From Rebecca billardiae RCC1528 (taxonomy: Eukaryota > Protista > Haptophyta), in NCBI GenBank assembly GCA_965240325.2, contig OZ251228.1, forward strand, positions 2,480,001 to 2,544,000: a DNA stretch of 64,000 bases, given 5' to 3'. Shown here piece after piece: positions 7,274-63,972 of the stretch. The position numbers were made by a program, and so were the translations under genes. The notes beneath the pieces were generated by a model. It was not told where the DNA came from. It did no database searches and worked only from the letters and a program-made list of their open reading frames with translations. Positions within the stretch are counted from its first letter, which is position 1. Each line of letters starts with the position of its first letter.

Positions 7274-8995
7274 TCAGGGCAGGCCGTGCTGATCGCCGGC
7301 CGCCGCGAAGGACGCGGCGGCCTCATCCCGGAGCTCGGGCCAGTACTCGGGAAGCACCGCGCGGCCGCGGCTGATTGCGTCCGCCACCCGATTGCGCGCC
7401 CCAGGCACATGCTTGCAGAGCAGCGTGCTGGATGTCTCCGCCGCGAGCAGGGCGAGGTCTTGCAGCAGGCAGTTGAGCACCGGTCGGTGGGGCACAGACA
7501 TGCGCGACAGCCACGCCACGGATGCAGAGTTATCACACAGTAAGAGGAGGTGCACAGCGGAGCGGCCGGCGAGCCAGCGCAAGCCGGCGAGCAGGACGCA
7601 CAAGCACTCGAGCTCGTTGATGTCCCACGCCTCGCCGGCCGGCACGAAGGCGCGCAGGTCCCACGCGGCGACATGGCCCGCCGACGACGCCGCCCCACCG
7701 CGCCCCGTGGAGAGGGCGGCGTCCGTGGCCACCGCCAGCCGCTCCGAGGGTCGCACGTACAGCTGCCGCCGACACGAGCCCCGCTCGAGCAGCCGCGCGA
7801 AGAAAGCGCACTCGCGCGGCAGCAGCACCCCCAGGGGCGCCACGAGGGTGCCGGACGCAGCGAACGCATCGTGCCGCGCATAGAGGAGGTCGAGGAAGGG
7901 GCGGATGAACGGGCGAACCGCGGGCTGTATCCGAGCGATCCAGCCGAGCTTGCCGATGAGCGAGCTGAGCTCCGGGCGCGTCACGCGGCTGCCGAGCAGC
8001 GTGAGCAGCGCCGGGAACCACTTGGCGCGCTTCCGCTCGGGTAGAGACACCGAGCCCTGGACCGCGTCAATGACGACGCCAAGCAGCTCGATGTGCTGGC
8101 ATGCGGGCACGATCTTGGTCGGCTTGGCCGACGGCGGCAGACCCGCGGCGCGCAGCGTCGAGCAGTAGAGCTGGAATGCCCGATCGAGGTCCCCCCGGTG
8201 CGAGCTCCACCCGAAACCGTCATCGACAAAATTCTTGAGCTTGAAGCGCAGCTCCCCCGACCAGCGCGCCACGAACGCGTGCCGCAGCAGATCTGAGAGC
8301 CGGCAAAACAGGAACGGCGCGGACGCGGCGCCGAAGGGGAGCGAGGTGTACACGTAGTAGGCGCCCTCCCACCAAATGCAGAGCAGCCACAGATCCTCCG
8401 GGCGCACGGCGACGCGCGTGTATGCCGCGTCGATGTCCACCTTGAAGATCCAGGTGCCGGGGGTCAGATCGGCCAGGAGCTCGTCCAGCGACTCAAAGGT
8501 GAACCGCGGCGCGCGGATGTCGGCGTTCACGCCCGAGGCCGTCATGTCCACGATGAGGCGGAAGTCGTCCTCGTCCTTCGGTACGCAACCGAGCGGCGAC
8601 ACCGCCACTGGCCGCGGCAGGGGCCGGCCGCCGCGCGCCGGCCCCGCCAGCACGCCCGATGACACATACTCGGCGAGCCGCGCGCGCACAAACTCGGGCT
8701 GCGCCAGCGAGGAACGGTGGTTGGGACGGAACCGCGACACGCGCGCGCCGCGGTAGAGCAGATCGACGCCGTCACGCAGCTCCACGGACAGGTCAACGCC
8801 GGTGAAGGCATGGATGAAGGACGCCAGCGCCACGTAGTTGCGCTGCATGGCGTTGGGCACGAGACTGTGTGCGAGGTCAGCGCGCAGGCCGGTGCGCGCG
8901 ACCATCTCGGCGGAGGTGATGGGCGGGCGAGTCATAGCGAGCGGCGCGCCGCGGAACGCGGCGGGCACCGACAGGGGATCTCGTCGCGCGCCCAC
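7274..8995 (-). CDS. DIRS1-type reverse transcriptase / RNase H
   Basis: RT motifs VSPLGCVPK, FRLIVDM, FKVDIDAAY, LPFGAASAPFLF and NFVDD. RNase H motifs ATDAA, INELE, LCDNSASV and HVPGARNRVADAISR. The start is uncertain (GTG, or reinitiation/frameshift after gag). Confidence 0.92.
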   Translation of the reverse strand: MGARRDPLSVPAAFRGAPLAMTRPPITSAEMVARTGLRADLAHSLVPNAMQRNYVALASFIHAFTGVDLSVELRDGVDLLYRGARVSRFRPNHRSSLAQPEFVRARLAEYVSSGVLAGPARGGRPLPRPVAVSPLGCVPKDEDDFRLIVDMTASGVNADIRAPRFTFESLDELLADLTPGTWIFKVDIDAAYTRVAVRPEDLWLLCIWWEGAYYVYTSLPFGAASAPFLFCRLSDLLRHAFVARWSGELRFKLKNFVDDGFGWSSHRGDLDRAFQLYCSTLRAAGLPPSAKPTKIVPACQHIELLGVVIDAVQGSVSLPERKRAKWFPALLTLLGSRVTRPELSSLIGKLGWIARIQPAVRPFIRPFLDLLYARHDAFAASGTLVAPLGVLLPRECAFFARLLERGSCRRQLYVRPSERLAVATDAALSTGRGGAASSAGHVAAWDLRAFVPAGEAWDINELECLCVLLAGLRWLAGRSAVHLLLLCDNSASVAWLSRMSVPHRPVLNCLLQDLALLAAETSSTLLCKHVPGARNRVADAISRGRAVLPEYWPELRDEAAASFAAAGDQHGLP

Positions 8996-32782: not shown

Positions 32783-32993
32783 AACTCTGTGCGCGGAGCA
32801 GCAGTGCTGATGTGCACATTGAACATGCGCACTGGCGGGTCCCGGTGGCGCGCGGTGGCGCCGCGCGCGTGCTACTCGCTAATATTGCAACTTCCGTCGC
32901 CGACGTCACATTCATACATCGCAGGATAAGTGCTGCGAAACTAGCCAGCTACGAGGATTGTCTGTCTCTCCTGACAACATCAGCAGCAGAATG

Positions 32994-33616
32994 TTACATC
33001 TTGAAGAACTTGCCTGCGAGCGTTGACGCGGGGCGGGGTGCGGGCCACGGGACAGCGGACGTGGTGACACGGACGCGGGCGATTGTTGAGCAAGTGCCGG
33101 GGCATAGAGGCCGCGCTGAGCGAGTGCGCGTGGGCGCGCGATACGCGCCATACCGCTGGATTGTCCCGAGTACAGGAACTCGCCCGGGTGTTTGAGCGTG
33201 TACGCCTCCGCAAACTTGGCCTCTTCCGAGAGCGAGAGGTGGTGCTGGAATCGCGAGTTCTTGTCGCGCTTCGCAGTGTGCGCGTACCAGCCGCACTCCT
33301 GCGCGGCTGTCTGCGGCTCGTCGTATTTCTCGTGCGGTAGCCGGTTTGTGCGTAGCATGGCGTTGATCGTCTCCTTGACGTCGCTCGGCGCGCTCGCGAT
33401 GTCGATGTCCTCGTTGAACACCATGCCCACCTTCCCGGTCACCGTCGGCTGCTCTCGCCCCATGCCATTGTTCATGGCGACTGAGCGGCCGGGGTTGGCC
33501 GAGTAGTGGGTCTTCTTCCCTCGAGCGACCACAGCCTGCTCTTTGGACACATGCTTGGCCCAAATCTGCTGCACCGCCACCTGGTTGCCCTCGAAGATGG
33601 GCGACTCCCAGTTCAT
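32994..33616 (-). CDS. FAM183/CFAP144-like ciliary microtubule protein (2 exons)
   Basis: Motif PHEKYDEPQTAAQECGWY. ATG at 33616, an intron at about 33153-33014, and last exon GKFFKM*. Confidence 0.65.
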
Positions 33617-33972
33617 CCCCGGTTTCTGCGGGCACGTGCGCGCGTGGCGGGCACGGGCACGGGGCGCGGTCGTGGGAGGGGTTGCACGTGAGGTGGCCAC
33701 ATGCGGTCCACGTCCGACGAATAGCCGGTGACCAGCGCGCGCGTACGGAATTGCGGAACGCCATCCTCCCGTGCCGCGAACGCTCACGGCCACGCCGCCC
33801 TGCTGGTTACAAGGCCGTCAGCGGGCTGCGCCGCGAAACAGTCTTCTCTTCTGCTTTCTGCAGCGAGGTTTTTTTCGATGCTGGATGTTATTTTCCGACA
33901 GCTCCGCGCGCGACACTTCATTTCGATCTGGTGCCAACGCGCGCCCTCGGCCGCCCTCAGCGGCGCTCCGCC

Positions 33973-35355
33973 TCAGGCCCCGACGCCGAGCGCGCCATCA
34001 ATCACCGCCTGCAGCTTGTCCAGACCTTTGGCGGCCTTGGCGCTGATGCCGACGACGGCGAGCGGGCGCGAGAGCTCCGCATTCTCGGCGCACAGCCCGT
34101 CCGCCAGGCTCTCGATCTCGCGCACCGCGCGCTCCTTGAGCTCGCGCGCGCCGTCCGCGCCGCCCATCTCGATGGCGAGATCGAGCTTGTTGAGCGCGAC
34201 GGCGTGCGGCCGCTGCACGTACTCGGGGTTGTACAGCGCGAGCTCGCGGTGGAGCGCGGCGTACTGCTCGGCGGGGCTGAGCTCCGAGCTCGCGGCGTCG
34301 AGCACGTACAGCAGCACGCGGCACCGGCGCACGTGCCGCAGGAAGAGCCGGCCCAGCCCGCGGCCGCGGTGCGCGTCCGCAATCAGCCCAGGCAGGTCCA
34401 CCAGCACAGGCCGCTCGGCGCCCGCCTCCTCGGCGGCGCCGGCGGGCTCGACGCGGCCGACGTTGGGGATGAGCGTGGTGAACGGGTACGCGCCGATCGT
34501 CGGCTTCGCGCGCGTCAGCCGCGCGAGCAGCGTCGACTTGCCCGCGTTCGGGAAGCCGATGAAGCCGACATCTGCGACGGTGCGCAGGATGAGCTCGAGC
34601 TCGGCGTCGTCGCCCGGCTGGCCGCGTGCCATCTCCTTCTGGTCGGCGGCGCTGAGCCGGGTCTCGGCGGGCCCGCGCGGGTCGTCGAAGAGGAACAGCC
34701 CGCCCTCGCCGCCCTCGGCGACCACGACCTCGTCGTCCGGCGAGACGAGGTCGGCGAGCAGTCGGCCTTGCTTCGTCCTGACGACCGTGCCGGGCGGCAC
34801 GGGCACGCGCGTCGGCCGCGCGTCGTACATGTTGAGCGCGTCGGCTGAGATGCCGCGCAGCCGACTCTCGGCCTCGGCCCAGCTGCGCTGCCGCCGGTAG
34901 TTCACCAGGCCCTCGCATCGCCCGCCGTCCGCGGCCTTGATCAGCGGCCGCGCACCGACTGCCTCTGTGAGGTTGAGCAGCGTCTGAACGGACGTGTCGA
35001 CGTACAGCACGACGTCGCCGCCGCGCCCGCCGCCGAAGGGCGGGATCAGCTCGCCGAGGTTGTCACGGTCGAGACCCTGCGACGACTTTGGAAGCCGCTC
35101 CACCCGCCCGTCGCCGCCGCGGCCGGCGCGCACCGCGAGGCGCGCCGAATCGAACTCGGTCACGGCCTGCTGGCGCGCCTCGCGCGGCTGCGGCGTGGCG
35201 CTTGCGCACGCTGAAACAAAGGCGCGTGTCGCGCGCGTCGAGAGGCCGAGATGGGCGCGCGGGCGCACCCCCACGCGTGCTGGGTACACGCGCGCTCCCG
35301 CGTCCAGCGCGGCGCACGCCACGACGACGAGCACCCGCGCCGCCGCCACCATCAT
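33973..35355 (-). CDS. obg: Obg/CgtA GTPase, probably plastid-targeted
   Basis: Gly-rich Obg fold (GRGGDG, GGGRGGDV). G1 GFPNAGKST, G2 YPFTT, G3 DLPG, G4 NKLD, G5 ISA. Confidence 0.93.
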   Translation of the reverse strand: MMVAAARVLVVVACAALDAGARVYPARVGVRPRAHLGLSTRATRAFVSACASATPQPREARQQAVTEFDSARLAVRAGRGGDGRVERLPKSSQGLDRDNLGELIPPFGGGRGGDVVLYVDTSVQTLLNLTEAVGARPLIKAADGGRCEGLVNYRRQRSWAEAESRLRGISADALNMYDARPTRVPVPPGTVVRTKQGRLLADLVSPDDEVVVAEGGEGGLFLFDDPRGPAETRLSAADQKEMARGQPGDDAELELILRTVADVGFIGFPNAGKSTLLARLTRAKPTIGAYPFTTLIPNVGRVEPAGAAEEAGAERPVLVDLPGLIADAHRGRGLGRLFLRHVRRCRVLLYVLDAASSELSPAEQYAALHRELALYNPEYVQRPHAVALNKLDLAIEMGGADGARELKERAVREIESLADGLCAENAELSRPLAVVGISAKAAKGLDKLQAVIDGALGVGA

Positions 35356-35519
35356 CTATTCGCAATATGGATTTGATGGTCCTTTGATGACTCTTCGTCG
35401 TTCCACGGCCGCGCTGGCCGGCGCGTTCCCGGCCCGCCTCGTCAACACACGCGCCCGCCCCGGCTGCGCCGCCGGGCGACGCAGGCGCCAGTCGGTGCGC
35501 TACGCACAAGCTGGCCGGC

Positions 35520-36911
35520 ATGGTCAACGCGAAGAACCCCAAGTGCGGTCACGCCGGCTGCACCACGCAGCCTACGTTCAGCATGCCGGGCGACGCGCGC
35601 GCCAGCTGGTGCGCTGCGCACAAGCTGGCCGGCATGGTCGACGTGAGGAACCCCAAGTGTGATCACGCGGGCTGCACCACGCGGCCTAACTTCGGCATGC
35701 CGGGCGACGCGCGCGCCAGCCGATGCGCCACGCACAAGCTGGCCGGCATGGTCGACGTGAAGCACCCCAAGTGTGATCACACGGGCTGCACCAAGCAGCC
35801 TAACTTCGGCATGCCGGGCGACGCGCGCGCCAGCCGGTGCGCTACGCACAAGCTGGCCGGCATGGTCAACGTGAAGAAACCCAACTGTGATCACACTGGC
35901 TGCACCACGGTGCCTTACTTTGGCATGCCGGGCGACGCGCGCGCCAGCCGGTGTGCTACGCACAAGCTGGCCGGCATGGTCGACGTGAGGAGCCGCAAGT
36001 GTGATCACGCGGGCTGCAGCAAAGTGCCTTCTTTCGGCATGCTGGGCGACGCGCGCGCCAGCCGGTGCGCCACGCACAAGCTGGCCGGCATGACCGACGT
36101 GGTGAGCCGCAAGTGTGATCACACGGGCTGCACCAAGCAGCCTAACTTCGGCATGCCGGGCGACGCGCGCGCCAGCCGGTGCGCTACGCACAAGCTGGCC
36201 GGCATGGTGGACGTGAAGCACCCCAAGTGTGATCACGCCGGCTGCACCACGGTGCCTTACTTTGGCATGCCGGGCGACGCGCGCGCCAGCCGGTGTGCTA
36301 CGCACAAGCTGGCCGGCATGGTCGACGTGAGGAGCCCCAAGTGTGATCACACGGGCTGCAGCAAGGTGCCTTCTTTCGGCATGCCGGGCGACGTGCGCGC
36401 CAGCCGGTGCGCTACGCACAAGCCGGCCGGCATGCTCAACACTCAGCTCGCCGTCCCCAAGCGCAGGCTGGAGCATGGCACCGGCGACCAGGGCACACGC
36501 GCAGCGAAGCGACAGCACAAACCCACCAGCTGCGTTGCTGCATTATCGGACGCCGCGCCGCAGGTGTCTGCACCGCCGCCGCTGGTCGCAGTCAGCATCG
36601 TCCGCTGGCGCGCGCCAGATGGCACGATCCATTCGATTGACGACGGGGTGGTCAATGATGGTGCCCTGGGCCTGCACGAGCTGCATCAGCGTGGCAACGC
36701 AGGTGGCGATGCAATCCGGGCTGCCAGTGGCAGCCACGGCCAGGGACTACCAGCAAGTATCAACACCACCTCTGCGCCAGCAGCTGCTCCACCATCATCA
36801 TCGATGGCAGTGACGGGAGCACGACGGCAGCAACCACAGGTCATACCGGTGGTGATGGCCAGGAGGGTCCGATGGGTCGACGCCAGGCAGGATGCTGGGA
36901 ATTCGTCGTGA
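35520..36911 (+). CDS. EsV-1-7-type Cys/His tandem-repeat protein, 8 x 38 aa
   Basis: 114-bp units encoding MVDVKxPKCDHxGCTxxPxFGMPGDARASRCATHKLAG, followed by KRRLEH...KRQHK. Confidence 0.85.
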   Translation: MVNAKNPKCGHAGCTTQPTFSMPGDARASWCAAHKLAGMVDVRNPKCDHAGCTTRPNFGMPGDARASRCATHKLAGMVDVKHPKCDHTGCTKQPNFGMPGDARASRCATHKLAGMVNVKKPNCDHTGCTTVPYFGMPGDARASRCATHKLAGMVDVRSRKCDHAGCSKVPSFGMLGDARASRCATHKLAGMTDVVSRKCDHTGCTKQPNFGMPGDARASRCATHKLAGMVDVKHPKCDHAGCTTVPYFGMPGDARASRCATHKLAGMVDVRSPKCDHTGCSKVPSFGMPGDVRASRCATHKPAGMLNTQLAVPKRRLEHGTGDQGTRAAKRQHKPTSCVAALSDAAPQVSAPPPLVAVSIVRWRAPDGTIHSIDDGVVNDGALGLHELHQRGNAGGDAIRAASGSHGQGLPASINTTSAPAAAPPSSSMAVTGARRQQPQVIPVVMARRVRWVDARQDAGNSS

Positions 36912-37491: not shown

Positions 37492-37591
<100 letters not shown>

Positions 37592-37599
37592 ATACACAG

Positions 37600-38555
37600 T
37601 ACAGCAACTGGGCACGGACCTGCGACAAGGCATGCCGCCTTTCCCCACGCGCCCTTCAGGTTGTCCCGGCTCAGCCGGTCGCTTCGGCGGCCGACGGGCC
37701 CTCGGCCGGCTCCCCCTTCCCGGGGACTCGGTGGGGCACCGCCAGGAGTGTCTCGCGGCGGGCGGGCCGAGCGCGCGGGTCGCCAGCTGACCCCGCGACG
37801 TTCGATTCGACTGCTCTGCGCTGGCACGTGCACGCGGAGATCAACCACACGCAGCGGGTCCGGGATAGGCACTGGCACCCTCTTTCTCCAGCCGGCCGCC
37901 GGCTGCATCGCCTTGCGGGGCGATGCAGCAGGTGGACGCCGCTGCACCCATCTGGCCCTTGGCGCTGGCCTCCTCCGTGCCCCTCGCTCCACCCTAGGTG
38001 GGGCAGGCCGCAGGGGGTGCGGGGTGTGACGAGCCCAGGGGCCAGGTTCCCCAGCATCAAGCACTGCATCTGCAGCAGCCCGCCGGCGGGCCGGGCTGCG
38101 ACGTCGACTACAACCTCATCCGCTTCATCGCCCAGAGCGCACTAGGCGGCGCGCTCACTCTCCAAGCCCCTCTTCTACAGCTGCGCGCCGCTTGGCCGGC
38201 GCGCGGCGACGCGTACTACGACCTCATCCTCATCCAGGCGCCCACGCGGGCGCACGGGGGCGACAGCCGCGTCTGCCGTCTGCCGCAGCTGCTCGCCGCT
38301 AGGTCGGCGGGCGGCGACATTGACTACGACCTCACCCTCATCCAAGTGCTCCGGAAGGCGCTCGGCCGCGGCGGCATCTGCCGTCGCCGCCGCGTGCCCC
38401 AGGCCGAGGCGGTGCTCCATCCCGGCCCCGCTCCCGTAGGGGGGCAGGGCTGCGGGTGGCGCACTGTCTGACCTGGACGGAAGGCGCGGACGCATTCTAC
38501 TATGTGTCTGTTGCACTCTGAGCCTGACGCTTGTTCGATGCTGCCACGTCGTTAA
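37600..38555 (+). mobile_element. Truncated element between (CT)n and (TA)n, ending CCACGTCGTTAA
   Basis: The 3' 160 bp match 24593-24759. Contains a degenerate ORF with three D.(D/Y)Y(N/D)L..I-like motifs. The left boundary is uncertain. Confidence 0.5.
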
Positions 38556-42755: not shown

Positions 42756-43853
42756 TCAGCAGCAGCCGCCGCCGCTTTCGCCGCCCTGCTTCTGGCGCAG
42801 GTTGACGCCCCGGTTCGCATCCGCTTCCGTCCCCGGCATGGCTTGGCTCTCCATGCGGTTCTTGATCTCCGTCGCCTGCGCACCGGGCGCGCGGAGAGGC
42901 AGGCGCACGCGGCACGCGGCACTCGGTGCCGGTGAGAGATGGCACAGCATGGCGCGGACACATGGGCGTGCGGGGGGTCGCGGCGCGTCCGCGGAAGCGC
43001 GAGCGCGCGCAGCACCATAGTCAGGAATGCCGTCTCCACGTTGTTCGCGCTCTTTGCCGACGTCTCGAGGAACGGCATCTTATTCTTGTCCGCAAACTCC
43101 TTGGCGGCCTCAAAGCGCACCTGGCGCGCCTCGCCGATCGCGAGGTCCGACTTGTTGCCCACGAGCAGCTTGGAGACGTTCTCGCGCGCGTACTTGTTGA
43201 TCTCGACCAACCACTGCGGGCGCGCGCGGGGGCGAGGGGAGCCGCGGGCCGCCACGCTTCAGCCCAGCCCGCCCGTCCCCGGGGCGGGCGCGCGTGGGTG
43301 GCTCACGCGCGCGCGCGCGCGCGGGTGCCGCTGCGCGCTGTGGCGCGGCGCGCACATCGTTCACGCTGTCGAACGAGTTCTTGTTCGTCACGTCGTAGAC
43401 AACGATGATGCCGTGGGCGCCGCGGTAGTATGTGCTGCTGATCGTGCGGAAGCGCTCCTGCCCCGCCGTGTCCCAGATCTGCAGCTTGATGGTCTTGCCA
43501 TCGAGCTCGATCGTGCGGATCTTGAAGTCGACGCCGATTGTGCTGATGTACGAGTCCATCCATGTGTCGTCGGCGAAGCGCAGCAGCAGGCACGACTTGC
43601 CCACGCCCGAGTCGCCGATTAGCACCAGGATAAACAGGTAGTCATAGTCCGGCTGCCCATGGTACGGGCACACGGCACGCACGCGCGCATGGGACCGCCC
43701 AGGGGAGCACCGCGGGTTGCGGCGTGCGCATGCTCAGCGTATGGGGCGCACGGGCGCCCGGTGCCCGGCGAGCGGTGGGAAGAGGGGCCAAAGGGCTCGA
43801 CGACGCCTTGCCATCGCAGCCCGGCGCGCGTGCGCCCGGCTGCGCACCTTCAT
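42756..43853 (-). CDS. RAB1: Rab1/Ypt1 small GTPase, 4 exons
   Basis: MK|[38 protein letters not shown] and C-terminal GGCC. GT-AG introns inferred. Confidence 0.93.
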
Positions 43854-44176
43854 GCTGCGTCAGCTGCTTCACCGCGCGCAGCTGCGCAGCCTGCCGCCGC
43901 ACTTGCACGCCGAAGGCTCAGTGCACCGGACTCGTCGCGAAATGGGACTTCGCGCAGACGCCATCCTGCGGATCTTGGCCGACGCGGCGCCCCCTTCCGG
44001 CATCCGACAACAAAGCAGAAACAAAGCGGAGCCACCGAGCCAGCCGCGCCCGCCTTGTTCACCCGAGCAGCAAGGCCTGTTGCGGGCCCAGCGCCCCGGC
44101 GCTGGTTGGCGTGCCCAGCCGGCGAGGGTACGCGCGGGTTTTGCCGCGGCCGTGTGGCTTACGTGCGCGCGCCACC

Positions 44177-44866
44177 ATGGAGTCGGCGGAGGAAACGCTC
44201 GCGCCCATCTCGCCGCGCGTCAAGCGGAAGGTTCAGCAGCCGGCTCTCGCGCTTACAGAAATGGACGCTGAGTCGCAGCTCATGCACCTGCGCCGGGCGT
44301 TCGAGGTGTTTGACGCGGACAAGTCGAACTCGATCGACGTGAGTGAGCTCAGAGGGCTCCTGACCAACCTTGGCATGACCGAGGACGAGAGCAACATCGA
44401 GGCCCTCTTTGCAGTCGCCGACGCGGACGGCAACGGGGAGATCAGCTTCGAGGAGTTCTGCGCGGTCGTGGGGGCCAAGATCGTGCCGATCGAGGGGGAC
44501 GCGGATGGCGAGATGGATGACGCGTGGGCCGTCTTCACCGCCGAGCTCCCGCCCGACAAGCGCGGCCCCGACGCCGTGGTGACCGCCAGCACCCTCTTCA
44601 CGGTGCTGCAGCACATGGAGCTGGGCATGTCCGACCTCGAGGCGGAGGAGATGCTCCGGGTGGTCGAGGTGTTCCACGGGCGGCAGCCGACGGGTCGCGT
44701 CACACTCGGCGAGTGGAAGGCGTTCATGCACGAGCGCCTGGGGCTGGACAAGCCCCAGGCCGAAGCGGCGCGCTCTGCAGCCGCGCTGGCGAGCACGCAC
44801 TACGCGACGCCTCCGCCCCCACCAGCCAGAGGGCGGGGCGCAGGGAAGGGGAACGATCGCGTATGA
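44177..44866 (+). CDS. Calmodulin-like EF-hand protein
   Basis: DADKSNSIDVSE and DADGNGEISFEE, with a degenerate second lobe. ATG in GCCACCATGG context. Confidence 0.85.
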   Translation: MESAEETLAPISPRVKRKVQQPALALTEMDAESQLMHLRRAFEVFDADKSNSIDVSELRGLLTNLGMTEDESNIEALFAVADADGNGEISFEEFCAVVGAKIVPIEGDADGEMDDAWAVFTAELPPDKRGPDAVVTASTLFTVLQHMELGMSDLEAEEMLRVVEVFHGRQPTGRVTLGEWKAFMHERLGLDKPQAEAARSAAALASTHYATPPPPPARGRGAGKGNDRV

Positions 44867-50287: not shown

Positions 50288-50612
50288 TGTAGCTCTCTGA
50301 TCAAGAACTAGTGCCTTGCGTGCCGGGTAGCTCTCTGATCAGTAGGTTACGACGCGGTGGGTTCATTCTCCTGATGGCTCATTGATGAATACCATTTGTC
50401 GTCACGAAGCGGTGGATTCGTTCTCCTGATGGCTCCTTGATGAATGTAGCTCTCTGATCAAGAACTAGTGCCTTGCGTGCCGGGTAGCTCTCTGATCAGT
50501 AGGTTACGACGCGGTGGATTCATTCTCCTGATGGCTCATTGATGAGTACCATTTGTCGTCACGAAGCGGTGGATTCGTTCTCCTGATGGCTCCTTGATGA
50601 ATACCATTTGTC
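50288..50612. repeat. 157-bp tandem duplication with internal subrepeats
   Basis: Units 50288-50444 and 50445-50601. Each holds two GTAGCTCTCTGATCA and two GCGGTGG.TTC.TTCTCCTGATGGCTC.TTGATGA motifs. Confidence 0.9.
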
Positions 50613-55672: not shown

Positions 55673-57895
55673 TTAATCATCATCGTCATCATCAGACGAC
55701 GACAGATCGCATGACATCACAGTCCAATGGTCAGATTCGTCGGTGTAGCCTGTATCACCGTGTGCCGGCATTCGGCAGTCACCCGCGGCCCCAATGCATC
55801 CGCTCTCGAGTCTCCCAAATGGCGGCAGCGGTTGGAGCAGCTGCGGGGAGGCGTCCGAGACAGTGGCGATGCGGCTCGTGCGTTTGTGCTGTCGCTTTGC
55901 GGCGCGTGTGCCCTGGTCGCCGGTGCCATGCTCCAGCCTGCGCTTGCGGACGGCGAGCTGAGTGTTAACCATGCCGGCCAGCTTGTGCGCAGCGCACCGG
56001 CTGGCACGCGAGTCGTCCGGCACGCCGAATGAAGGCCGTGCGGTGCAGCCCGCGTGATCACACTTGCGGCTCTTCACGTCGATCATGCCGGCCATCTTGT
56101 GCGTCGCGCATCGGCTGGCGCGCGCGTCACCCGGCATGCCAAACAAAGGCCCCTTGGTGCAGCCGGCATGATCACACCTGGGGCTCACCACGTTGATCAT
56201 GCCGGCCAGCTTGTGCGTGGCGCACCGGCTGGCGCGCGCGTCGCCCGGCATGCCGAATGAAGGCCCCTTGGTGCAGCCGGTGTGATCACACTTGGGGCTC
56301 ACCACGTTGATCATGCCGGCCAGCTTGTGCGTAGCGCACCGGCTGGCGCGCGCGTCGCCCGGCATGCCGAACGAAGGCCACGTGGTGCAGCCTGTGTGAT
56401 CACACTTGGGGCTCACCACGTTGATCATGCCGGCCAGCTTGTGCGTAGCGCACCGGCTGGCGCGCGCGTCGCCCGGCATGCCGAACAAAGGCCCCTTGGT
56501 GCAGCCTGTGTGATCACACTTGCGGCTCCTCACGTCGACCATGCCGGCCAGCTTGTGCTCAGCGCACCGGCTGGCGTGCGCGTCGCCCGGCATGCCGTAC
56601 GAAGGCTGCTTGGTGCAGCCCGCGTGATCACACTTGCGGCTCCTCACGTTGACCATGCCGGCCAGCTTGTGCTCAGCGCACCGGCTGGCGCGCGCGTCGC
56701 CCAGCATGCCGAAGTAAGGCCGCGTGGTGCAGCCGGTGTGATCACACTTGGGGTTCACCACGTCGACCATGCCGGCCAGCTTGTGCGTGGCGCACCAGCT
56801 GGCGCGCGCATCGCCCGGCATACCGAACGAAGGCTGCGTGGTGCAGCCCGCGTGATCACACTTGGGGTGCTTCACATCGACCATGCCGGCCAGCTTGTGT
56901 GTGGCGCATCGGCTGGCGCGCGCGTCACCCGGCATGCCAAAGTAAGGCACCGTGGTGCAGCCCGCATGATCACACTTGGGGCTCTTCACGTCGACCATGC
57001 CGGCCAGCTTGTGCGTGGCGCACCGGCTGGCGCGCCGCTCGCCCGGCATGCTGAACGTAGGCTGCGTGGTGCAGCCGGTGTGATCACACTTGGGGTTCAC
57101 CACGTTGACCATGCCGGCCAGCTTGTGCGTGGCGCACAGGCTGGCGCGCGCGTCGCCCGGCACGCCAAACACAGGATGCTTGGTGCAGCCCGCGTGATCA
57201 CACTTGGGGTTCCTCACGTCGACCATGCCGGCCAGCTTGTGCGTGGCGCACCAGCTGGCGCGCGCGTCGCCCGGCATGCCGAACGAAGGCTGCGTGGTGC
57301 AGCCCGCGTGATCACACTTGGGGTTCTTCGCGTTGGCCATGCCGGCCAGCTTGTGCGTGGCGCATCGGCTGGCGCGCGCGTCACCCGGCATGCCAAATGA
57401 AGGCACCTTGGTGCAGCCTGTGTGATCACACTTGGGGTGCTTCACATCGACCATGCCAGCCAGCTTGTGCGTCGCGCATCGGCTGGCGCGCCGCTCGCCC
57501 GGCATGCCGAAGTTAGGCACCTTGGTGCAGCCGGTGTGATCACACTTGCGGCTCTTCACGTCGACCATGCCGGCCAGCTTGTGCGTAGCGCACCGGCTGG
57601 CGCGCCGCTCGCCCGGCATGCCGAAGTAAGGCGCCTTGGTGCAGCCGGTGTGGTCACAATTGGGGTGCTTCACATCGACCATGCCGGCCAGCTTGTGTGT
57701 GGCGCATCGGCTGGCGCGCGCGTCGCCCGGCATGCCGAACGAAGGCCCCTTGGTGCAGCCCGCGTGATCACACTTGGGGCTCTTCACGTCGACCATGCCG
57801 GCCAGCTTGTGCGTGGCGCATCGGCTGGCGCGCGCGTCGCCCGGCATGCCGAATGCTGCAGGCGCCTTGGTGCAGTCCGCGTGATCACACTTCAT
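55673..57895 (-). CDS. EsV-1-7-type tandem-repeat protein, 17 x 38 aa, with NLS-like motif and acidic tail
   Basis: Uninterrupted 740-aa ORF. RKRRLEH...KRQHKR, ending DESDHWTVMSCDLSSSDDDDDD. Confidence 0.88.
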   Translation of the reverse strand: MKCDHADCTKAPAAFGMPGDARASRCATHKLAGMVDVKSPKCDHAGCTKGPSFGMPGDARASRCATHKLAGMVDVKHPNCDHTGCTKAPYFGMPGERRASRCATHKLAGMVDVKSRKCDHTGCTKVPNFGMPGERRASRCATHKLAGMVDVKHPKCDHTGCTKVPSFGMPGDARASRCATHKLAGMANAKNPKCDHAGCTTQPSFGMPGDARASWCATHKLAGMVDVRNPKCDHAGCTKHPVFGVPGDARASLCATHKLAGMVNVVNPKCDHTGCTTQPTFSMPGERRASRCATHKLAGMVDVKSPKCDHAGCTTVPYFGMPGDARASRCATHKLAGMVDVKHPKCDHAGCTTQPSFGMPGDARASWCATHKLAGMVDVVNPKCDHTGCTTRPYFGMLGDARASRCAEHKLAGMVNVRSRKCDHAGCTKQPSYGMPGDAHASRCAEHKLAGMVDVRSRKCDHTGCTKGPLFGMPGDARASRCATHKLAGMINVVSPKCDHTGCTTWPSFGMPGDARASRCATHKLAGMINVVSPKCDHTGCTKGPSFGMPGDARASRCATHKLAGMINVVSPRCDHAGCTKGPLFGMPGDARASRCATHKMAGMIDVKSRKCDHAGCTARPSFGVPDDSRASRCAAHKLAGMVNTQLAVRKRRLEHGTGDQGTRAAKRQHKRTSRIATVSDASPQLLQPLPPFGRLESGCIGAAGDCRMPAHGDTGYTDESDHWTVMSCDLSSSDDDDDD

Positions 57896-58129
57896 GCCAG
57901 CCAGCTTGTGCGTGGCGCACCGGATGGCGAGCGCGTCGCCCAGCGGCGTAGTGTGTTGGGGGGGGGGGGGGGGGGGGGGGGGGGGCGTTTGGCGACCGTG
58001 CGAGGCTGGTGTTCATGGGCTTCATCCGGTTGCCACATTTAAAGCCTTGACCACCTGCCACATTATTAATTTTAAGGGCCCCGCGACCGGCTACCACATT
58101 AATTAAGGCGACCGGCTGCCACATTAAGG

Positions 58130-58930
58130 ATCCGCGCCAACGCTCGCACGGCCACCGACACGCCACGCGCGGAGCGATGCGCCGATGGTCTTCGGCACGG
58201 TCGCAAACGTCCTGAACCGCGCTGGCCTGTTCAGTCGCCCTTTGCTCGACGTAGTCGTGCACTGGCCGGTGGAGGCAGTGGCGCCGGGCGTCGGGAAGCA
58301 CTTCGAGTTCCTCGGTGAGGCTGGCGAGCCCGCGCCCGACAAGAAGTAGCGCGGCGGCGCGTGCGCGCCGTGCTCGCGGTGACGTACGTGCTGCTCGCGA
58401 AGGGAAAGCAGTTCAAGCAGGGACACCTCGAGCACTCGGCAGATTATCTCGCCTTGCTCGCCGCTGACGGCCAGCGTGCGAAGCGCGCTGCTGGCATACA
58501 TGGCGTTGAGCAGGTCACCGTGCGAGAGTGCTCCGTCAGACCCGTGGCCAAGGCCCTTGTCGATCAGCTGCGCTGAAGGGCGCGCGCAAAAGTGCGTGAT
58601 GGAGGTCAGTTCCAGGCAGGCTCCATGTTGGCTGCAGCGCTGCGTCTGCGCAGCATGCCCCCGCACGCGCGTCTGCACGCGCACGCCTGCGCTCAGCTGC
58701 AACTTGCGCTCGAGCTCAGCCTTGAGCGCGCTCAGCGTGCCCTTCAGCAGCTCGAGTGGTTCCTCCTTGCGCCACGCGTCCGCGTGGCGCCGCGAGTAGT
58801 TGCTTGTTCAGCGGCTGCACCTGCACCGCCGCGCGCTCGACGCTCGCCTCGACCACCTCCGCGCGCACGCGCTCGCCGACGCGCTCCAGGGACTGCTGCG
58901 TAAGCTCGTGCGCACAGTGGAGCGCCGGAG
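58130..58930 (-). pseudogene. Frameshifted coding-like remnant between the divergent repeat genes
   Basis: Protein-like stretches (KEEPLELLKGTLSALKAELERKL...) broken by frame switches. Family not recognised. Confidence 0.3.
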
Positions 58931-60349
58931 CGACACCTCCGCGCCATCCACCGCGCTTATCGCCTGGCTGGGCGCTATGGAGAGCTACACGCGCGCCGGG
59001 GGCGCGAGCCCGACGACGCATTCGCAGTTCACCTCGCTGTACGACGAACGCCACCTCGAGCGCACGAGCGCATGCGTCTGCAGCGGGAGCACCGACGGCC
59101 GCTCCGGCGGGCTCGCCGCCGACTTTCCCCAGTAGTAACCAGCATATCAAAGTCGTCTTCGGTAGCGCGCGAGGCTCGCTACAATACGGTGATGCTACAC
59201 CACATGGGTTGCGTCACGCGCAGCACCACATGGGCGGCCGGCAGCGGCATACCATCGGCTGAGCTGTTCCTAATTCACTGTTCCTCTGCAGAGAAACGTG
59301 CGCGCGTCGACGAGCACTTGCGCGCTCCGCGGCCTTCGGCACCTTGACATCATTGCGCGTGCGTATGACAGGCGCGGATGGTTGCGCACTTGCGTGTCCG
59401 TCGGCGGCGCTCACGATCCGCGAGCACCGTCCGCCGGGGCCTTGCCATTGTATTGTCGACCTTGGACGGCGCACGGCGCACCGCGGCGCGCTCGCGGCCT
59501 TCGGTCAGGTAGCCCTCGCTGGACATGTGCTGGCCTCTGTTGCTCCGCTGCTCATCGGACCGGGTGCCAATCAGTGGCCCGCAATTGACGACCCGTGCGA
59601 CTGCCCCGCATGCTCGCACACGGGATGATTCAGCCTGGAGCCACCCCGGTCGAGACTTTGGGATGTCAAAGCAGTGGCCGAGCATGCGCTCAAGCGCTCT
59701 CGTCCTCATGCAGCGTGACCTCTACCGTTCTACCGTCTGAGCGTCTGCCGTCACAGGAGTCGGACAAGTCCCCAAAGCTGGGCGCAACCAGTCCCTCGGG
59801 AGTAGCCGCCAGGCCTCCCGCCACCACCGCAGCCGCGCCGCCCAGGGTTGTAAGTCCTGGGATTACCCGGGGTGGTCAGGCTGGCGCGCACGCTCGCGGA
59901 ACCTTGGAACCCGTGCTCCCGCGCTGCGTCGCGTGTCACCCGTCGATCGTCGCCCCACCGCCACCTCTTCCCTCCCACCACCACCTCTTCCTCGACATCC
60001 TCGGCCTTCGCCGCAGCACCGACGCCCCCGCGCGCGGCCGCTGTGGCAGCGGGCAATCAGCGTGCGCTGCGCCGCCGCGCCGCCGCGCCGCCCAGAGTTG
60101 TGCAGCGCGGCCTGTGAGTCCTGCGAGCTGCCCTATGTGGTCAGGCTGGTACGCACGCTCGCTAACGCTTCGAACACGCGCTGCATAGCGTGTCGCCCCT
60201 CGATCGCCGCCCCACCGCCGCGTTTTCCTCCACGCACGGCGGCTTGCTCGGCGGCACGTTTCGCCAAACGCCCCCCCCACCAAGGAGACTTTAAAAATCC
60301 ACCCCCTTGCCTCCCCACACGCTCTACGCCGCTGGGCGACGCGCTCGCC

Positions 60350-62264
60350 ATCCCCTTACCGCAGTCTGCTTCTATACGAAGCAGATTTGGGTGGGCGGCG
60401 GCGTGGGAGCGCTGGGCGCGCAGGTAGACGGCGCGAGCGGGCGCGCGCACGCTTGGGAGCATCTTTGGGACCATACCCATCGATGACCCGAGCCTCGCCG
60501 CCACCGCCCTTCCCCTTCTCCAGTGCCACGGCGTCCAGACGGAGTGCCAAACGAGCGTTTGAACATGCCACGAAGCAGATTTGGAATGGTGCTCAAACCG
60601 CTGCGGAGGTGATCGTCAGGCTGCGGCGTGAGGCTGGGAGGGGTATCGTAACGTAATGGATGACGGTCGTCACCCGTGCGCCGGTCGGTAGGCTGCTACT
60701 CAGCGCCCGTAGGCTCGTACGCTGCACCTCGAGCTCAAGATCCCTCACCGTGGGCTCCGCGCGAGTGACACTGAGCACGAGGAGGGTGTACTTGCGAGGG
60801 GTACGCGCGTCGCGCCTGCGATCGACGCCAAGACAAGCAAAGAAGCGATACCACCACTCCCGCGAAGCGCCTGCCTGACTTGCACTCGGTGTACACACCG
60901 CGTGCGGCGTGCCGCAAGGAAGGAGCCCGACCCGTGCCTCAGCGTGTCCCGCGCGACTGGCTGGTGGGCACTTTCAGCGTGATCGGTCATGCGAACGCGC
61001 GCAGAGTAACGCGCGCAGTATGTACACTGTCTACAATCATCTTTGTCGGTCGCCCACGTGCTTGAAGCGGCTGCAAGGAGTGCAGCCGGGTGTCGCGGGC
61101 CAGTCGAGCGCCCAGCCAGCACGATGGCAGCTCGGCGCCGCCGCGCGTTGCCATCGTGGAGGCGGTGAAGCTGGAGGTACTAGGCTGGCGGCTGTCTGAG
61201 GGTAGCTAGACCATGCCTGGGCACTCTCAAGCCGTGTTCAACGCCCAGGCGCGCGTGGGTGGGCCGCAAAGCGCGCGCAGCGGCCGCCGTCAAATCTGCT
61301 TCCATACGAAGCAGATTGAACTGCGGTAAGGGGATAGTCCCCCTCGGGGCGCCAGTCCGGCTCAAAAGCGTTGCCGCGGCTCGCGAGATGGCTGCCCATC
61401 GCTCCCAGCGTGGGCCATCTCTCGCACAACGAGGGAGCGCCCACGCGGACACCACGGGCGCGACGGCGCGTGTGGCGTTGCAGGTTGTGTGACATGTACG
61501 TGCTTGAGGTATCTACGCACATTGGCGCCTGTAATCTACCTCCATTGTCGCTTGGCTTGTGCAAGCGACCGCTGCTGTGATCTTTGATCGTACGCCCGCC
61601 CGCGCGGGCGCCCTGCTCGGATTCTTACCCTGCGCTCCTGGATGAGTGAACGCGAGCAGTGCACGTAGCCTTCGGAGGGAGGCTGCCAGCGCGTGCGCGA
61701 GCTCTCGAGCCCATCCGATCCTTGCAGACACCCCCAGGAAGAGCTCCAGAGCCATACATGACAGAAGCTGCAGAAAAATCCCAATTCAAAAAGCAATCAC
61801 CGTAATGCGGGCTAATGCCTGGTGTACTACCACAGGAGCGGAGACGCTGGCCCTGGAGCGGCGAGCGAAACTACATGCGAGCTGCGAGCGCTGACGGCAT
61901 TCCATGAACGATGCGCAAACATCCACCACCGACAACTCCGGCCTCCCCCGGCGTTATGCACTTGTCTTTGCCCCGTGCACGGTCGGCGTGCACGTCGATC
62001 ACAGGCCATGCGGAAGCAGGGACAACAGGAGCTGGAGAGAGGTGGATACGAGTCGCCCAGCGATGCCAAGGCCTGAAGAAGAGTCATCTACGACCATCAA
62101 AGCCCCGCGCCCTGCCGTGCCCGCCCTTTCATGCCTCCCATACCTCGGCCCTTGTGCGTCGTGCCGCACTGGCACGCAGTGGGTCGTCATCACGAACCAA
62201 AAGCCTTGCGGCAACGCTTTTGCCTCAACTGCCGGCAGCCATCGTGCCCCGAGGGGGACTATCC
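60350..62264. mobile_element. 1.9-kb insertion flanked by ATCC, with an internal inverted end-to-start junction
   Basis: Removing 60354-62264 restores GACGCGCTCGCCATCC|GGTGCGCCACGCACAA, exactly as in the paralog leader (about 57905-57937, minus strand). Confidence 0.7.
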
Positions 62265-62298
62265 GGTGCGCCACGCACAACGGCACAAGCTGGCCGGC

Positions 62299-63972
62299 AT
62301 GGTCAACGTGGTGAGCCCCAAGTGTGATCACGAGGGCTGCACCAAGCGGCCTTCACTCGGCATGCCGGGTGACGCACGCGCCAGCCGGTGCGCTGCGCAC
62401 AAGCTGGCCGGCATGGTCAACGTGGTGAGCCCTAAGTGTGATCACACCGGCTGCACCAAGGGGCCTTCATTCGGCATGCCGGGCGACGCGCCCGCCAGCC
62501 GATGCGCCACGCACAAGCTGGCCGGCATGGTCAACGTGAGGAACCCCAAGTGTGATCACGAGGGCTGCACCAAGCGGCCTTCACTCGGCATGCCGGGTGA
62601 CGCACGCGCCAGCCGGTGCGCTGCGCACAAGCTGGCCGGCATGGTCAACGTGGTGAGCCCCAAGTGTGATCACACCGGCTGCACCAAGGGGCCTTCATTC
62701 GGCATGCCGGGCGACGCGCGCGCCAGCCGGTGCGCCACGCACAAGCTGGCCGGCATGGTCGACGTGAGGAACCCCAAGTGTGATCACGTGGGCTGCACCA
62801 AGGGGCCTAACTTTGGCATGGCGGGCGAGCGGCGCGCCAGCCGGTGCGCCACGCACAAGCTGGCTGGCATGGTCGACGTGAAGAAACCCAAGTGTGATCA
62901 CGCGGGCTGCACCAAGGGGCCTAACTTCGGCATGCCAGATGACGCGCGCGCCAGCCGATGCGCCACGCACAAGCTGGCCGGCATGGTCGATGTGAAGCAC
63001 CCCAAGTGTGATCACACCGGCTGCACCAAGGGGCCTTCATTCGGCATGCCGGGCGACGCGCGCGCCAGCCGGTGCGCTGAGCACAAGCTGGCCGGCATGG
63101 TCGACGTGAGGAACCCCAAGTGTGATCATGCGGGCTGCACCACGGTGCCTTACTTTGGCATGCCGGGTGACGCGCGCGCCAGCCGATGCGCCACACACAA
63201 GCTGGCCGGCATGGTCGATGTGAAGCACCCCAAGTGTGATCACGCGGGCTGCACCACGCAGCCTTCGTTCGGTATGCCGGGCGATGCGCGCGCCAGCTGG
63301 TGCGCTGAGCACAAGCTGGCCGGCATGGTCGACGTGAGGAACCCCAAGTGTGATCACACGGGCTGCACCACGCGGCCTAACTTCGGCATGCCGGGCGACG
63401 CGCGCGCCAGCCGGTGCGCTACGCACAAGCTGGCCGGCATGGTCGGCGTGAAGAACCCCAAGTGCGATCACGCGGGCTGCACCAAGGGGCCTTCGTTCGG
63501 CATGCCGGGCGACGCGCGCGCCAGCCTGTGCGCCACGCACAAGCTGGCCGGCATGGCCGACTTGCAGCACCCCAAGTGTGATCACGCGGGCTGCACCAAG
63601 TGGCCTTCCTTTGGCATGCCGGAAGACGCATGCGCCAGCCGGTGCGCTGTGCACAAGCTGGCTGGCATGGTTAACACTCAGCTCGCCGTCCGCAGGCGCA
63701 GGCTGGAGCATGGCACCGGCGACCAGGGCACACGCGCATCTAAGCGACAGCACAAACGCACGAGCCGCATCGCCACTGTCTCGGACGCCACCCCGCAGCT
63801 GCTCCAACCGCTGCCGCCATTTGGGAGACTCGAGAGCGGATGCAACGGGGCGGGTGACTGCCGAATGCCGGCACACGGTGACACAGGACCCTACACTGAC
63901 GACGAATCTGACCATTGGACTGTGATGTCATTCGATCTGTCGTCGTCGTCTGATGACGATGATATGATTTAA
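62299..63972 (+). CDS. EsV-1-7-type tandem-repeat protein, 12 x 38 aa, with NLS-like motif and acidic tail
   Basis: ORF 62131..63972. ATG 62299 chosen by analogy with the paralogs. The C-terminus is highly similar to that of 55673-57895. Confidence 0.88.
   Translation: MVNVVSPKCDHEGCTKRPSLGMPGDARASRCAAHKLAGMVNVVSPKCDHTGCTKGPSFGMPGDAPASRCATHKLAGMVNVRNPKCDHEGCTKRPSLGMPGDARASRCAAHKLAGMVNVVSPKCDHTGCTKGPSFGMPGDARASRCATHKLAGMVDVRNPKCDHVGCTKGPNFGMAGERRASRCATHKLAGMVDVKKPKCDHAGCTKGPNFGMPDDARASRCATHKLAGMVDVKHPKCDHTGCTKGPSFGMPGDARASRCAEHKLAGMVDVRNPKCDHAGCTTVPYFGMPGDARASRCATHKLAGMVDVKHPKCDHAGCTTQPSFGMPGDARASWCAEHKLAGMVDVRNPKCDHTGCTTRPNFGMPGDARASRCATHKLAGMVGVKNPKCDHAGCTKGPSFGMPGDARASLCATHKLAGMADLQHPKCDHAGCTKWPSFGMPEDACASRCAVHKLAGMVNTQLAVRRRRLEHGTGDQGTRASKRQHKRTSRIATVSDATPQLLQPLPPFGRLESGCNGAGDCRMPAHGDTGPYTDDESDHWTVMSFDLSSSSDDDDMI

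Follow-up and report, generated by a model that had tools for sequence, protein, structure and literature searches.

Three genes in the 64,000-nucleotide stretch of DNA analyzed here (the window), designated A, B, and C, are best explained as lineage-specific nuclear paralogues of the EsV-1-7 family (Pfam PF19114) in a Pavlovophyceae-like haptophyte. That the host of these arrays is such a haptophyte and not a brown alga is new, and no paper linking the family to haptophytes was found in the literature searched. Also new is the observation that four columns of the repeat unit (9, 11, 35, and 36) are also the most variable within the arrays of 38 distant relatives, with residues drawn from a restricted, common set. 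We consider the chances about even that the products of A, B, and C are nuclear, sequence-specific nucleic-acid-binding proteins (the nucleic acid probably being DNA) of the transcription-regulator type, with the variable columns setting specificity.

Organization of the arrays and family membership

Gene A (35520..36911, forward strand) is an open reading frame for a 463-amino-acid EsV-1-7 array protein of 8 units, gene B (55673..57895, reverse strand) for one of 740 amino acids and 17 units, and gene C (62299..63972, forward strand) for one of 557 amino acids and 12 units. The arrays themselves occupy 35544..36437 (forward; 8 units of 38 amino acids), 55967..57889 (reverse; 17 units, with a one-residue insertion in unit 1), and 62323..63672 (forward; 12 units). 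Tandem Repeats Finder delimited 114-bp arrays at 35471-36434 (8.5 copies), 55968-57892 (16.9 copies), and 62283-63671 (12.2 copies), with 87-88% matches and 0% indels. A search with the PF19114 model (EsV_1_7_cys), which the original prediction had proposed, gave 8 matches in A (E = 2.6e-112, 366.8 bits), 17 in B (E = 1.5e-237, 767.4 bits), and 12 in C (E = 1.2e-166, 540.7 bits), all above the gathering score of 25 bits; the only other Pfam match in the scan of B and C was a chance one to DUF3017. The two programs thus agree on the three paralogs with 8, 17, and 12 near-identical 114-bp repeats that had been read from the sequence.

The spacing Cys-4-Cys-16-Cys-2-His recurs at exact 38-residue intervals in 36 units of A, B, and C together, and in these strict units the three Cys residues and the His are invariant (36 of 36). 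Unit 1 of gene B, the 37th unit, has a spacer of 17 residues, one more than the others. The units are uniform to an unusual degree, with a nucleotide identity of approximately 86%. The tandem period is exactly 38 residues in all three proteins, and in 120 relatives a spacing of 37-38 residues is seen most often.

Gene A is preceded, ahead of its start Met, by a degenerate half-unit (35471..35519, forward strand) that corresponds to the second half of the unit, without the first two Cys residues. Gene B has a similar degenerate half-unit (57896..57946, reverse strand) before its start Met, as revealed by translation and alignment, and the upstream half-unit of C is out of the unit frame because of an 8-nt insertion. 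No start codon was found before position 35520 in the open frame of A. Gene C also has an ATG farther upstream, at 62131, from which the protein would be 613 amino acids long, but the start at 62299 is more likely. The genes apparently lack introns. At the G+C content of 68% found here, long open frames alone are weak coding evidence, and no record of the products of A, B, and C was found in the assembly index. A gene for an Obg GTPase (33973-35355) is divergent from A, with the two start codons 164 bp apart.

A Foldseek search of BFVD matched the EsV-1-7 protein of Ectocarpus siliculosus virus 1 (Q8QNQ2, E = 1.2e-26) and Q8QNG4 (EsV-1-115, E = 1.3e-16) as well as proteins of Marseillevirus, Faunusvirus, Cedratvirus, Pithovirus, Klosneuvirus, and Tetraselmis virus. 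Together with PF19114 E values down to 1e-237, these matches bear out the assignment to the EsV-1-7 family that had been made by eye. The best database match to the window proteins showed 33-59% identity, and neither a sequence nor a fold match of the array to any solved structure was found. In AlphaFold2 models (pLDDT of about 90), the units form small strand-strand-helix-strand modules with a helix of three residues per unit. Zinc binding by the EsV-1-7 motif has been proposed in the literature, and the modules of A, B, and C are putative zinc-binding modules.

EsV-1-7 ranks among the largest gene families of brown algae and is also widespread in giant viruses. The known members, including EsV-1 ORF 7, Ectocarpus IMMEDIATE UPRIGHT (IMM), and brown-algal proteins, share with A, B, and C the same Cys3-His motif, a tandem period of 37-38 residues, and location in local clusters, and the Ectocarpus members, like A, B, and C, have no other Pfam domain. 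The genes described here differ from the known members in their haptophyte host, an orphan tail, and their unusually uniform units, and from IMM in the absence of an IMM-type NH2-terminal domain.

Variable columns and selection on the repeat unit

Among the 38 columns of the unit, 14 are invariant in the 36 strict units, including all four ligand positions, whose codons vary silently but never by replacement. Column entropy in these units peaks at columns 9 (2.43 bits), 36 (2.06), 11 (2.00), and 35 (1.88), and the next most variable columns are 4, 25, 32, 33, 8, and 37. The concentration of variation in two patches, as noted from the sequence, is thereby confirmed. These positions stand out because the arrays in the window are so uniform.

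The ratio pN/pS was 0.32 in the 28 conserved columns versus 1.33 in the 10 variable columns, a set of ten that was picked from the same data; only the four-column set was independently validated. For unit pairs no more than 6 nt apart, we counted 25 replacements in the variable columns versus 5 outside them, and 5 silent changes versus 11 (Fisher p = 8e-4). For the variable columns, the same pairs yielded an omega of 1.9-2.1 (p = 0.02-0.03), compared with 0.11 for the rest of the unit; these tests are of modest significance, the pairs are interdependent, and unit exchange blurs their history. Purifying selection on the unit outside the variable columns is shown by these data; the entropy and dN/dS check suggested earlier, applied to the units of A, B, and C, also gives an excess of replacements in the variable columns.

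In 38 other array proteins, the four most variable within-array columns were again 9, 11, 36, and 35 (Spearman 0.54, p = 5e-4). The alphabets are similar as well: Ser, Asn, and His account for a fraction of 0.86 at column 36 in A, B, and C and of 0.78 in the relatives, and at column 35 Lys, Arg, and Val account for 0.89 in A, B, and C and Lys, Val, Ile, and Arg for 0.83 in the relatives. Two relatives that are 95% identical differ at column 9 in four of five units.

The arrays themselves also change. Gene A has a higher-order period of 342 bp, attributable to a three-unit duplication, and units 1-2 and 3-4 of gene C, which differ by 1 and 3 nt, represent a recent two-unit duplication. Unit 8 of C is identical to unit 8 of B, and two units from one gene differ as much as two from different genes (by about 16 of 114 nt), which shows unit exchange. 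The description of a modular, rearrangeable array is therefore well founded.

COOH-terminal tails

Each array is followed by a basic, bipartite-NLS-like segment, located at 36456..36524 in A (forward strand) and shared with B and C, at 55880..55948 in B (reverse strand), where the first 50 tail residues have a net charge of +7, and at 63691..63759 in C (forward strand). These segments, like the acidic ends, are recognized by pattern and charge. B and C then terminate in an acidic end, of 47 amino acids with a net charge of -11 in B (55676..55816, reverse strand) and of 49 amino acids with a net charge of -10 in C (63823..63969, forward strand). This arrangement, with a basic segment in all three genes and a Trp-containing acidic end in two, agrees with the original prediction. 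The tail of A is 72-77% identical to those of B and C across the first ~48 residues, but homology stops at 36582 and the remainder of the long A tail has diverged; the tails of B and C are 92% identical with a pN/pS of 0.44. AlphaFold2 modeled residues 442-472 of the 557 in C as a helix, and the residues of C that match the basic segment of B were modeled as a helix with moderate confidence. No relatives of the tail of B were found among 1.84 billion representative proteins. The predicted protein plan thus comprises a start Met, 8 to 17 Cys3-His mini-domains, and a short basic NLS-like helix, with an acidic end in B and C, the tails appearing to be orphan sequences. The basic segment may serve as an NLS and the acidic end may be regulatory.

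Relatives with a nuclease-like domain

In 104 of 120 relatives, the majority of them located on giant-virus-like contigs, the array is followed by a conserved COOH-terminal domain of about 140-180 residues (AlphaFold2 pLDDT of 87.6). Matches of this domain model were nearly all to PD-(D/E)xK nucleases (McrC, R2 endonuclease, Bax1, Hjc, and restriction enzymes), with E values of 4e-3 to 0.1, all above 1e-3, and there was a weak Pfam match to Hjc (E = 0.003). The array of the relatives thus appears, on the basis of modeling, to be joined to a PD-(D/E)xK nuclease-like fold, an association that is new. Such giant-virus proteins, annotated in UniProt as "Endonuclease" (Faunusvirus, Brazilian cedratvirus, and Pithovirus LCPAC304) or derived from metagenomes (P0010, P0041, and P0046), have the same array, period, variable columns, and alphabet as A, B, and C, and their arrays likewise gain and lose units. 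Unlike them, A, B, and C do not end in this fold. The domain was not found in a six-frame translation of the whole window, and when the tails were compared with a profile of the domain from 108 relatives, 93 (A), 12 (B), and 6 (C) of 300 shuffles reached the real score; we do not count these as matches.

A Tc1/mariner transposase of Ectocarpus, TcMar-2_Ec32, carries an NH2-terminal EsV-1-7 domain (PMC12477816). The modules there sit where a DNA-acting enzyme usually has its DNA-binding domain, but A, B, and C contain neither a transposase nor any other enzyme domain.

Possible functions of the arrays

The inference of nucleic-acid binding gains indirect support from the nuclease-like domain of the relatives, the transposase fusion (PMC12477816), and the basic character of the arrays, whose net charges are +25 (A), +47 (B), and +30 (C) with a pI of 9.2-9.4; direct evidence that any EsV-1-7 protein binds nucleic acid was not found in the literature searched. 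Under this reading, the ligand would be DNA and the location of A, B, and C the nucleus. Each zinc module would offer a few variable polar or basic residues, at columns 9, 11, 35, and 36 and to a lesser extent 4, 8, 25, 32, 33, and 37, and the target would be set by the sequence in which module types follow one another. The arrays diversify as blocks of units are duplicated, units are exchanged between paralogues, and point substitutions arise at the variable columns. The family is one shared with giant viruses, in which the array lies ahead of a PD-(D/E)xK nuclease-like domain that the haptophyte copies lack.

The convergence with TAL effectors and KRAB zinc fingers that had been proposed applies to logic, not to kinship; for all the resemblance, A, B, and C are members of neither the TAL effectors nor the C2H2 arrays. 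In Xanthomonas and Ralstonia, TAL effectors similarly have near-identical tandem repeats of similar length with few hypervariable residues and a different variant string in each paralogue, together with a basic NLS-like segment, an acidic COOH-terminus, and shuffled repeats. The TAL fold, however, is a two-helix repeat of 33-35 residues, whereas the unit of A, B, and C is predicted to be a zinc-type strand/helix module; the variable residues of TAL repeats form one adjacent pair, whereas those of A, B, and C occupy at least four columns in two patches; and TAL effectors are secreted bacterial proteins in which one repeat reads one base, whereas A, B, and C are eukaryotic nuclear genes with no known code. 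Kinship was rejected because Pfam yielded PF19114 and no TAL or other repeat family. C2H2 arrays, including those of KRAB proteins, also combine a fixed scaffold and few varying positions with fast turnover and clustered paralogues, but the ligands of A, B, and C are Cys3-His, spaced Cys-4-Cys-16-Cys-2-His in a 38-residue unit. Membership was rejected given the absence of such a Pfam match at E values up to 0.01 and of any PDB match.

Alternatively, the arrays might be scaffolds that bind proteins or other ligands and do not read nucleic acid, the variable surface recognizing varied partners such as viral proteins, much as variable repeat receptors do. Protein-recognition repeats just as typically show diversifying residues on an otherwise constant scaffold, the whole-array model weakly matches Parkin, LIM, and PHD-type protein-binding zinc modules (E = 0.7-8), and the family is tied to giant viruses. 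The strong positive charge of the arrays, fusion partners elsewhere that act on DNA (the nuclease-like fold and the transposase), and a small polar alphabet (Ser/Asn/His, Lys/Arg/Val, and Gln/Arg) more like that of base-contacting positions argue against such a scaffold, which we regard as unlikely.

Several Cys3-His zinc-finger families bind RNA. The arrays might do so as well, each module reading a nucleotide or a short element as in PPR and PUF proteins; their Cys3-His ligands, period of 38 residues, basic charge, and modularity would fit. We consider this distinctly unlikely, given that the fusion partners of the relatives are DNA enzymes, that A, B, and C match no RNA-binding family in Pfam, and that the NLS-like segment and acidic end of B and C seem to recall the layout of a transcription factor.

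A surveillance family that, like KRAB zinc-finger proteins, targets transposons or viruses would fit the rapid array turnover, the diversifying positions, and the association of EsV-1-7 with giant viruses. The anti-transposon or antiviral role originally envisaged nevertheless found no support within the window. The region had been called TE-rich, but the only transposon-type match in about 30 open reading frames scanned was one reverse-transcriptase fragment (7274-8995), 27 kb from A, the nearest of the genes, and 47 kb from B. Given also that Pfam revealed no repressor-type domain in A, B, and C and that Ectocarpus IMM, the sole member whose phenotype is known, regulates development, we judge this role very unlikely.

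Finally, the closest relatives on giant-virus-like contigs, the absence from A, B, and C of the nuclease-like domain that most relatives carry, and the equal divergence within and between genes would suit decaying or selfish giant-virus relics with repeats kept by unequal crossing-over and gene conversion and with unconstrained variable columns, but this is the least probable reading, given the four ligand positions and ten more columns invariant in 36 units despite silent variation, an omega of 0.11-0.32 outside the variable columns, the constraint on the B and C tails, a variable-column alphabet shared with relatives at 30-45% identity, a G+C and third-codon-position G+C content matching that of host genes, and neighbors that are ordinary cellular genes.

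A DNA-reading role for the arrays of A, B, and C is thus plausible. A broader and, as a whole, unlikely extension is that EsV-1-7 arrays constitute a further natural modular DNA-recognition scaffold beside C2H2 fingers and TAL repeats, in which four residues per 38-residue module would specify the target with a small alphabet that is conserved between giant viruses and algae; by means of the array, giant viruses would aim a PD-(D/E)xK-type nuclease, and algal hosts (brown algae with IMM, and this haptophyte) would retain copies without the nuclease, as regulators in the nucleus. The same four positions vary, with the same small alphabet, across the whole EsV-1-7 family, and most virus-like relatives join the array to a nuclease-like domain. 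That a haptophyte carries the family is relevant to the debate on how viruses and hosts have exchanged these genes.

Three EsV-1-7 array genes

[quoted passage not shown] Gene A (35520–36911, + strand) is an open reading frame (ORF) for 463 amino acids, gene B (55673–57895, − strand) an ORF for 740 amino acids, and gene C (starting at 62131 or 62299 and ending at 63972, + strand) an ORF for 613 or 557 amino acids. The underlying 114-bp tandem arrays extend over 35471–36434 (+), 55968–57892 (−), and 62283–63671 (+), and each shows 87–88% matches with no indels. The 38 residues of the repeat unit are referred to here as columns 1 to 38. None of the three required a spliced gene model. The strict Cys-4-Cys-16-Cys-2-His spacing at exact 38-residue intervals is found in 36 units, and the spacer of the 37th, the first unit of B, is longer by one residue. 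The original prediction, made from the sequence alone, had thus described the three arrays, their unit numbers, and their spacing correctly. By every testable criterion, A, B, and C belong to the EsV-1-7 family. The sole additional match in a Pfam scan of the three products was to DUF3017, by chance. In an exact look-up, neither these proteins nor the shorter form of the C protein had a record in the assembly index.

A degenerate half-unit is located directly upstream of each array gene, and the methionine of the conserved motif that closes it is likely the start methionine. No start codon occurs earlier in the open frame of A or B, and the upstream half-unit of C is out of frame through an 8-nt insertion. 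Sequences upstream of the half-unit are unrelated among the three loci. Just before the half-unit of B, 63 bases 5′ of the start codon, is a perfect 28-base homopolymer (57958–57985; a run of G on the + strand, read as C in the orientation of gene B), which is prone to sequencing error and whose length could influence frame or expression. Antisense open frames of 292–372 amino acids cross all three arrays (35442–36518, −; 56282–57400, +; 63037–63915, −), and these most likely reflect repetition in DNA of high G+C content rather than genes.

Variation among repeat units

Fourteen columns of the unit were invariant within A, B, and C. Entropy was highest at columns 9, 36, 11, and 35, followed by columns 4, 25, 32, 33, 8, and 37. 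Pairwise pN/pS was 1.33 for the ten variable columns versus 0.32 for the other 28, and variants in the ligand codons were all silent. For the most similar unit pairs, 25 amino acid–changing differences fell in the variable columns and 5 outside, compared with 5 and 11 silent differences, respectively (Fisher p = 8e-4). Omega relative to the overall silent rate was 1.9–2.1 in the variable columns (p = 0.02–0.03) and 0.11 elsewhere. There is thus clear evidence that the unit columns are under very uneven constraint, and modest evidence that the variable columns are under diversifying selection.

Divergence between units amounted to ~16 of 114 nucleotides and was equal within and between genes, B and C had one identical unit in common, and the arrays have undergone recent duplication of two- and three-unit blocks. 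These observations indicate that the arrays exchange and duplicate units. The two patches of variable residues were combined almost freely, with coupling being not significant either within a unit (p = 0.06) or across the linker (p = 0.11).

A database search yielded 815 relatives, the best of which were 33–59% identical. Among the 38 relatives in which five or more units are in register, within-array variability was greatest at columns 9, 11, 36, and 35, in that order. The share of Ser, Asn, and His at column 36 was 0.86 in the window and 0.78 in the relatives; column 35 was occupied by Lys, Arg, or Val with a share of 0.89 in the window and by Lys, Val, Ile, or Arg with a share of 0.83 in the relatives; and Gln and Arg were favored at column 9 in both. 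In one pair of relatives with 95% identity, column 9 differed in four of five units. One small alphabet has thus been kept across proteins of 30–45% identity, which would not be the case for columns subject only to drift. A separate match, to the zinc-finger domain PF24906 named for plant WRKY19, was obtained for 5 of 80 relatives (best E = 5e-13), including P0011, P0015, P0075, and P0111; this sequence match hints that a related module may be present in land plants, from which the EsV-1-7 family is said to be absent.

Structure model

We obtained a structure model for the product of gene C with AlphaFold2, in which the units were modeled at a pLDDT of about 90. The modeled unit consists of a knuckle with the first two cysteines, a short hairpin, a three-residue helix with the Cys-2-His pair, and a short strand. 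Columns 9 and 11 are positioned before the first strand, and columns 35 and 36 after the last. Following the array, the basic segment was modeled as a helix with moderate confidence, and disorder was predicted for the acidic end. Sequence and fold searches with the array against solved structures yielded nothing significant.

Tails and the C-terminal domain of relatives

The first ~48 residues of the tail that follows the array are common to A, B, and C, with 72–77% identity between A and either B or C, and this shared part is basic, with a charge of +7 for both B and C. The latter two genes also share an acidic end (net charge of −11 in B and −10 in C), and their alignment extends just beyond the stop codon; the ~107 residues beyond the shared part of A are unrelated to B and C. 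Comparison of the B and C tails gave a pN/pS of 0.44 at a pS of 0.10. None of 1.84 billion representative proteins was related to the B tail, and a short query consisting of two units plus tail matched three array fragments only, all of them distant. The notion that the A tail is completed by a downstream exon was rejected, the only tblastn match (37596–37730, E = 0.025) being gapped and without the acidic end.

A conserved C-terminal domain was present in 104 of the 120 best relatives (profile of the domain, E ≤ 1e-10), and the 16 without it include all those named from cellular organisms (Sphacelaria, Pylaiella, Effrenium, and one EukProt entry). The AlphaFold2 model for one relative, P0041 (pLDDT of 87.6), matched almost exclusively PD-(D/E)xK nucleases in the PDB, including McrC, the R2 retrotransposon endonuclease, Bax1, Hjc resolvases, and restriction enzymes (E = 4e-3 to 0.1). 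The domain also gave a weak Pfam match to Hjc, and several viral matches carry the UniProt label "Endonuclease." PHROGs and NCBIfam searches provided no name for the domain. These matches, individually weak and jointly consistent, suggest that it is PD-(D/E)xK nuclease–like.

Relatives with this domain are encoded on gene-dense, intron-free contigs, one of 980 kb and others from IMG/VR giant-virus bins, with neighbors that include genes for ribonucleotide reductase, RING, ankyrin, DEAD-box, NUDIX, and Erv1/Alr proteins and many orphan genes. Two syntenic, giant virus–like metagenome contigs each contain an EsV-1-7 array gene (L002, 3452–4777; L003, 1864–3063), and the encoded proteins are identical over the last ~220 residues, including the C-terminal domain, and have arrays of 7 and 6 units, respectively. 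Both contigs have an unusually high G+C content (0.66), and their array genes adjoin that for the ribonucleotide reductase small subunit.

The window tails did not match the profile of the C-terminal domain. The acidic end was considered as a truncated remnant of this domain on the basis of matching columns hinted at by MAFFT, and this notion was rejected when a profile test against shuffled tails gave no support for homology. Because the tails are not homologous to the domain, we do not treat the window genes as broken.

Genomic setting

The G+C content across the window ranges from 58 to 77%. B and C are arranged head to head at a distance of 4.4 kb (4.2 kb with the C start at 62131), and A is located 19 kb from this pair, head to head with an Obg GTPase gene. 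The Obg-A intergenic gap (within positions 33973–35519) measures 164 bp from start to start, with ~50 bp of it being degenerate half-unit, and might function as a bidirectional promoter for both genes. About 600 bp 3′ of gene A is a (TC)47 microsatellite without interruptions (37495–37589).

Pfam analysis of ~30 ORFs of the window revealed genes for Obg, an AFG1 ATPase, an amino acid permease, and inositol monophosphatase, as well as short-chain dehydrogenase/reductase, EF-hand, and NHL matches. Among named proteins, those most similar to Obg were from Diacronema lutheri (64% identity) and, more distantly, Prymnesium parvum (44%). This one marker gene places the source with haptophytes close to the Pavlovophyceae and not with brown algae. 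Third-position G+C of coding frames was high, as in the host, and no viral hallmark genes, tRNA genes, or Rfam matches were seen within the 64-kb window. The notion of an integrated virus or transposons around A, B, and C was rejected, with Pfam showing cellular genes and one reverse transcriptase fragment. This fragment (ORF 7274–8995; PF00078, E = 2.8e-8) adjoins a complex minisatellite of ~1 kb (6032–7101; periods of 11, 31, 42, and 190 bp), and the two may be one retroelement remnant.

A 2.7-kb Logan contig from public short reads (L001, run ERR14847148) was 99.96% identical to positions 32783–35514 of the window, indicating that the same organism has already been sequenced. It ends exactly at the beginning of array A, and short-read assemblies probably lack or collapse the arrays of this organism. 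Elsewhere, a 157-bp unit occurs in two tandem copies with 98–99% identity (50288–50601) in the stretch of lowest G+C (0.58), where nearby ORFs had no Pfam match. Closely similar EF-hand pairs were matched in two ORFs (710–2314, −; 43724–44866, +), which may be paralogues 41 kb apart.

Proposed function

With a probability that we place at about even, A, B, and C are predicted to encode array proteins that would act in the nucleus and bind nucleic acid, most likely DNA, with the variable columns setting target specificity. DNA appears the likeliest ligand in view of the nuclease-like fold in relatives, the Tc1/mariner transposase that serves as an EsV-1-7 fusion partner in Ectocarpus (PMC12477816), the arrays' net charge of +25 to +47, and the polar alphabet. 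A role for the arrays as a protein-binding scaffold seems unlikely, and one as an RNA binder somewhat less likely still. The original prediction had also invoked anti-transposon or antiviral surveillance in a TE-rich region; such a region was not borne out, one reverse transcriptase fragment among ~30 ORFs being the only transposon-type signal, and we regard this role as highly improbable. Least probable of all is that the genes are decaying relics, given that the variable columns keep a shared alphabet.

A, B, and C resemble TAL effectors and C2H2 arrays in logic only, with a uniform scaffold, few variable residues, and array shuffling, and membership tests place them in neither group. They also lack the defining domain of virus-type array-plus-nuclease proteins. 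The three genes are additions to a family already known. Relative to the literature searched, three points appear to be new: a haptophyte host for the EsV-1-7 family, the four columns that vary throughout the family and draw on a common alphabet, and how often arrays are fused to a nuclease-like domain.
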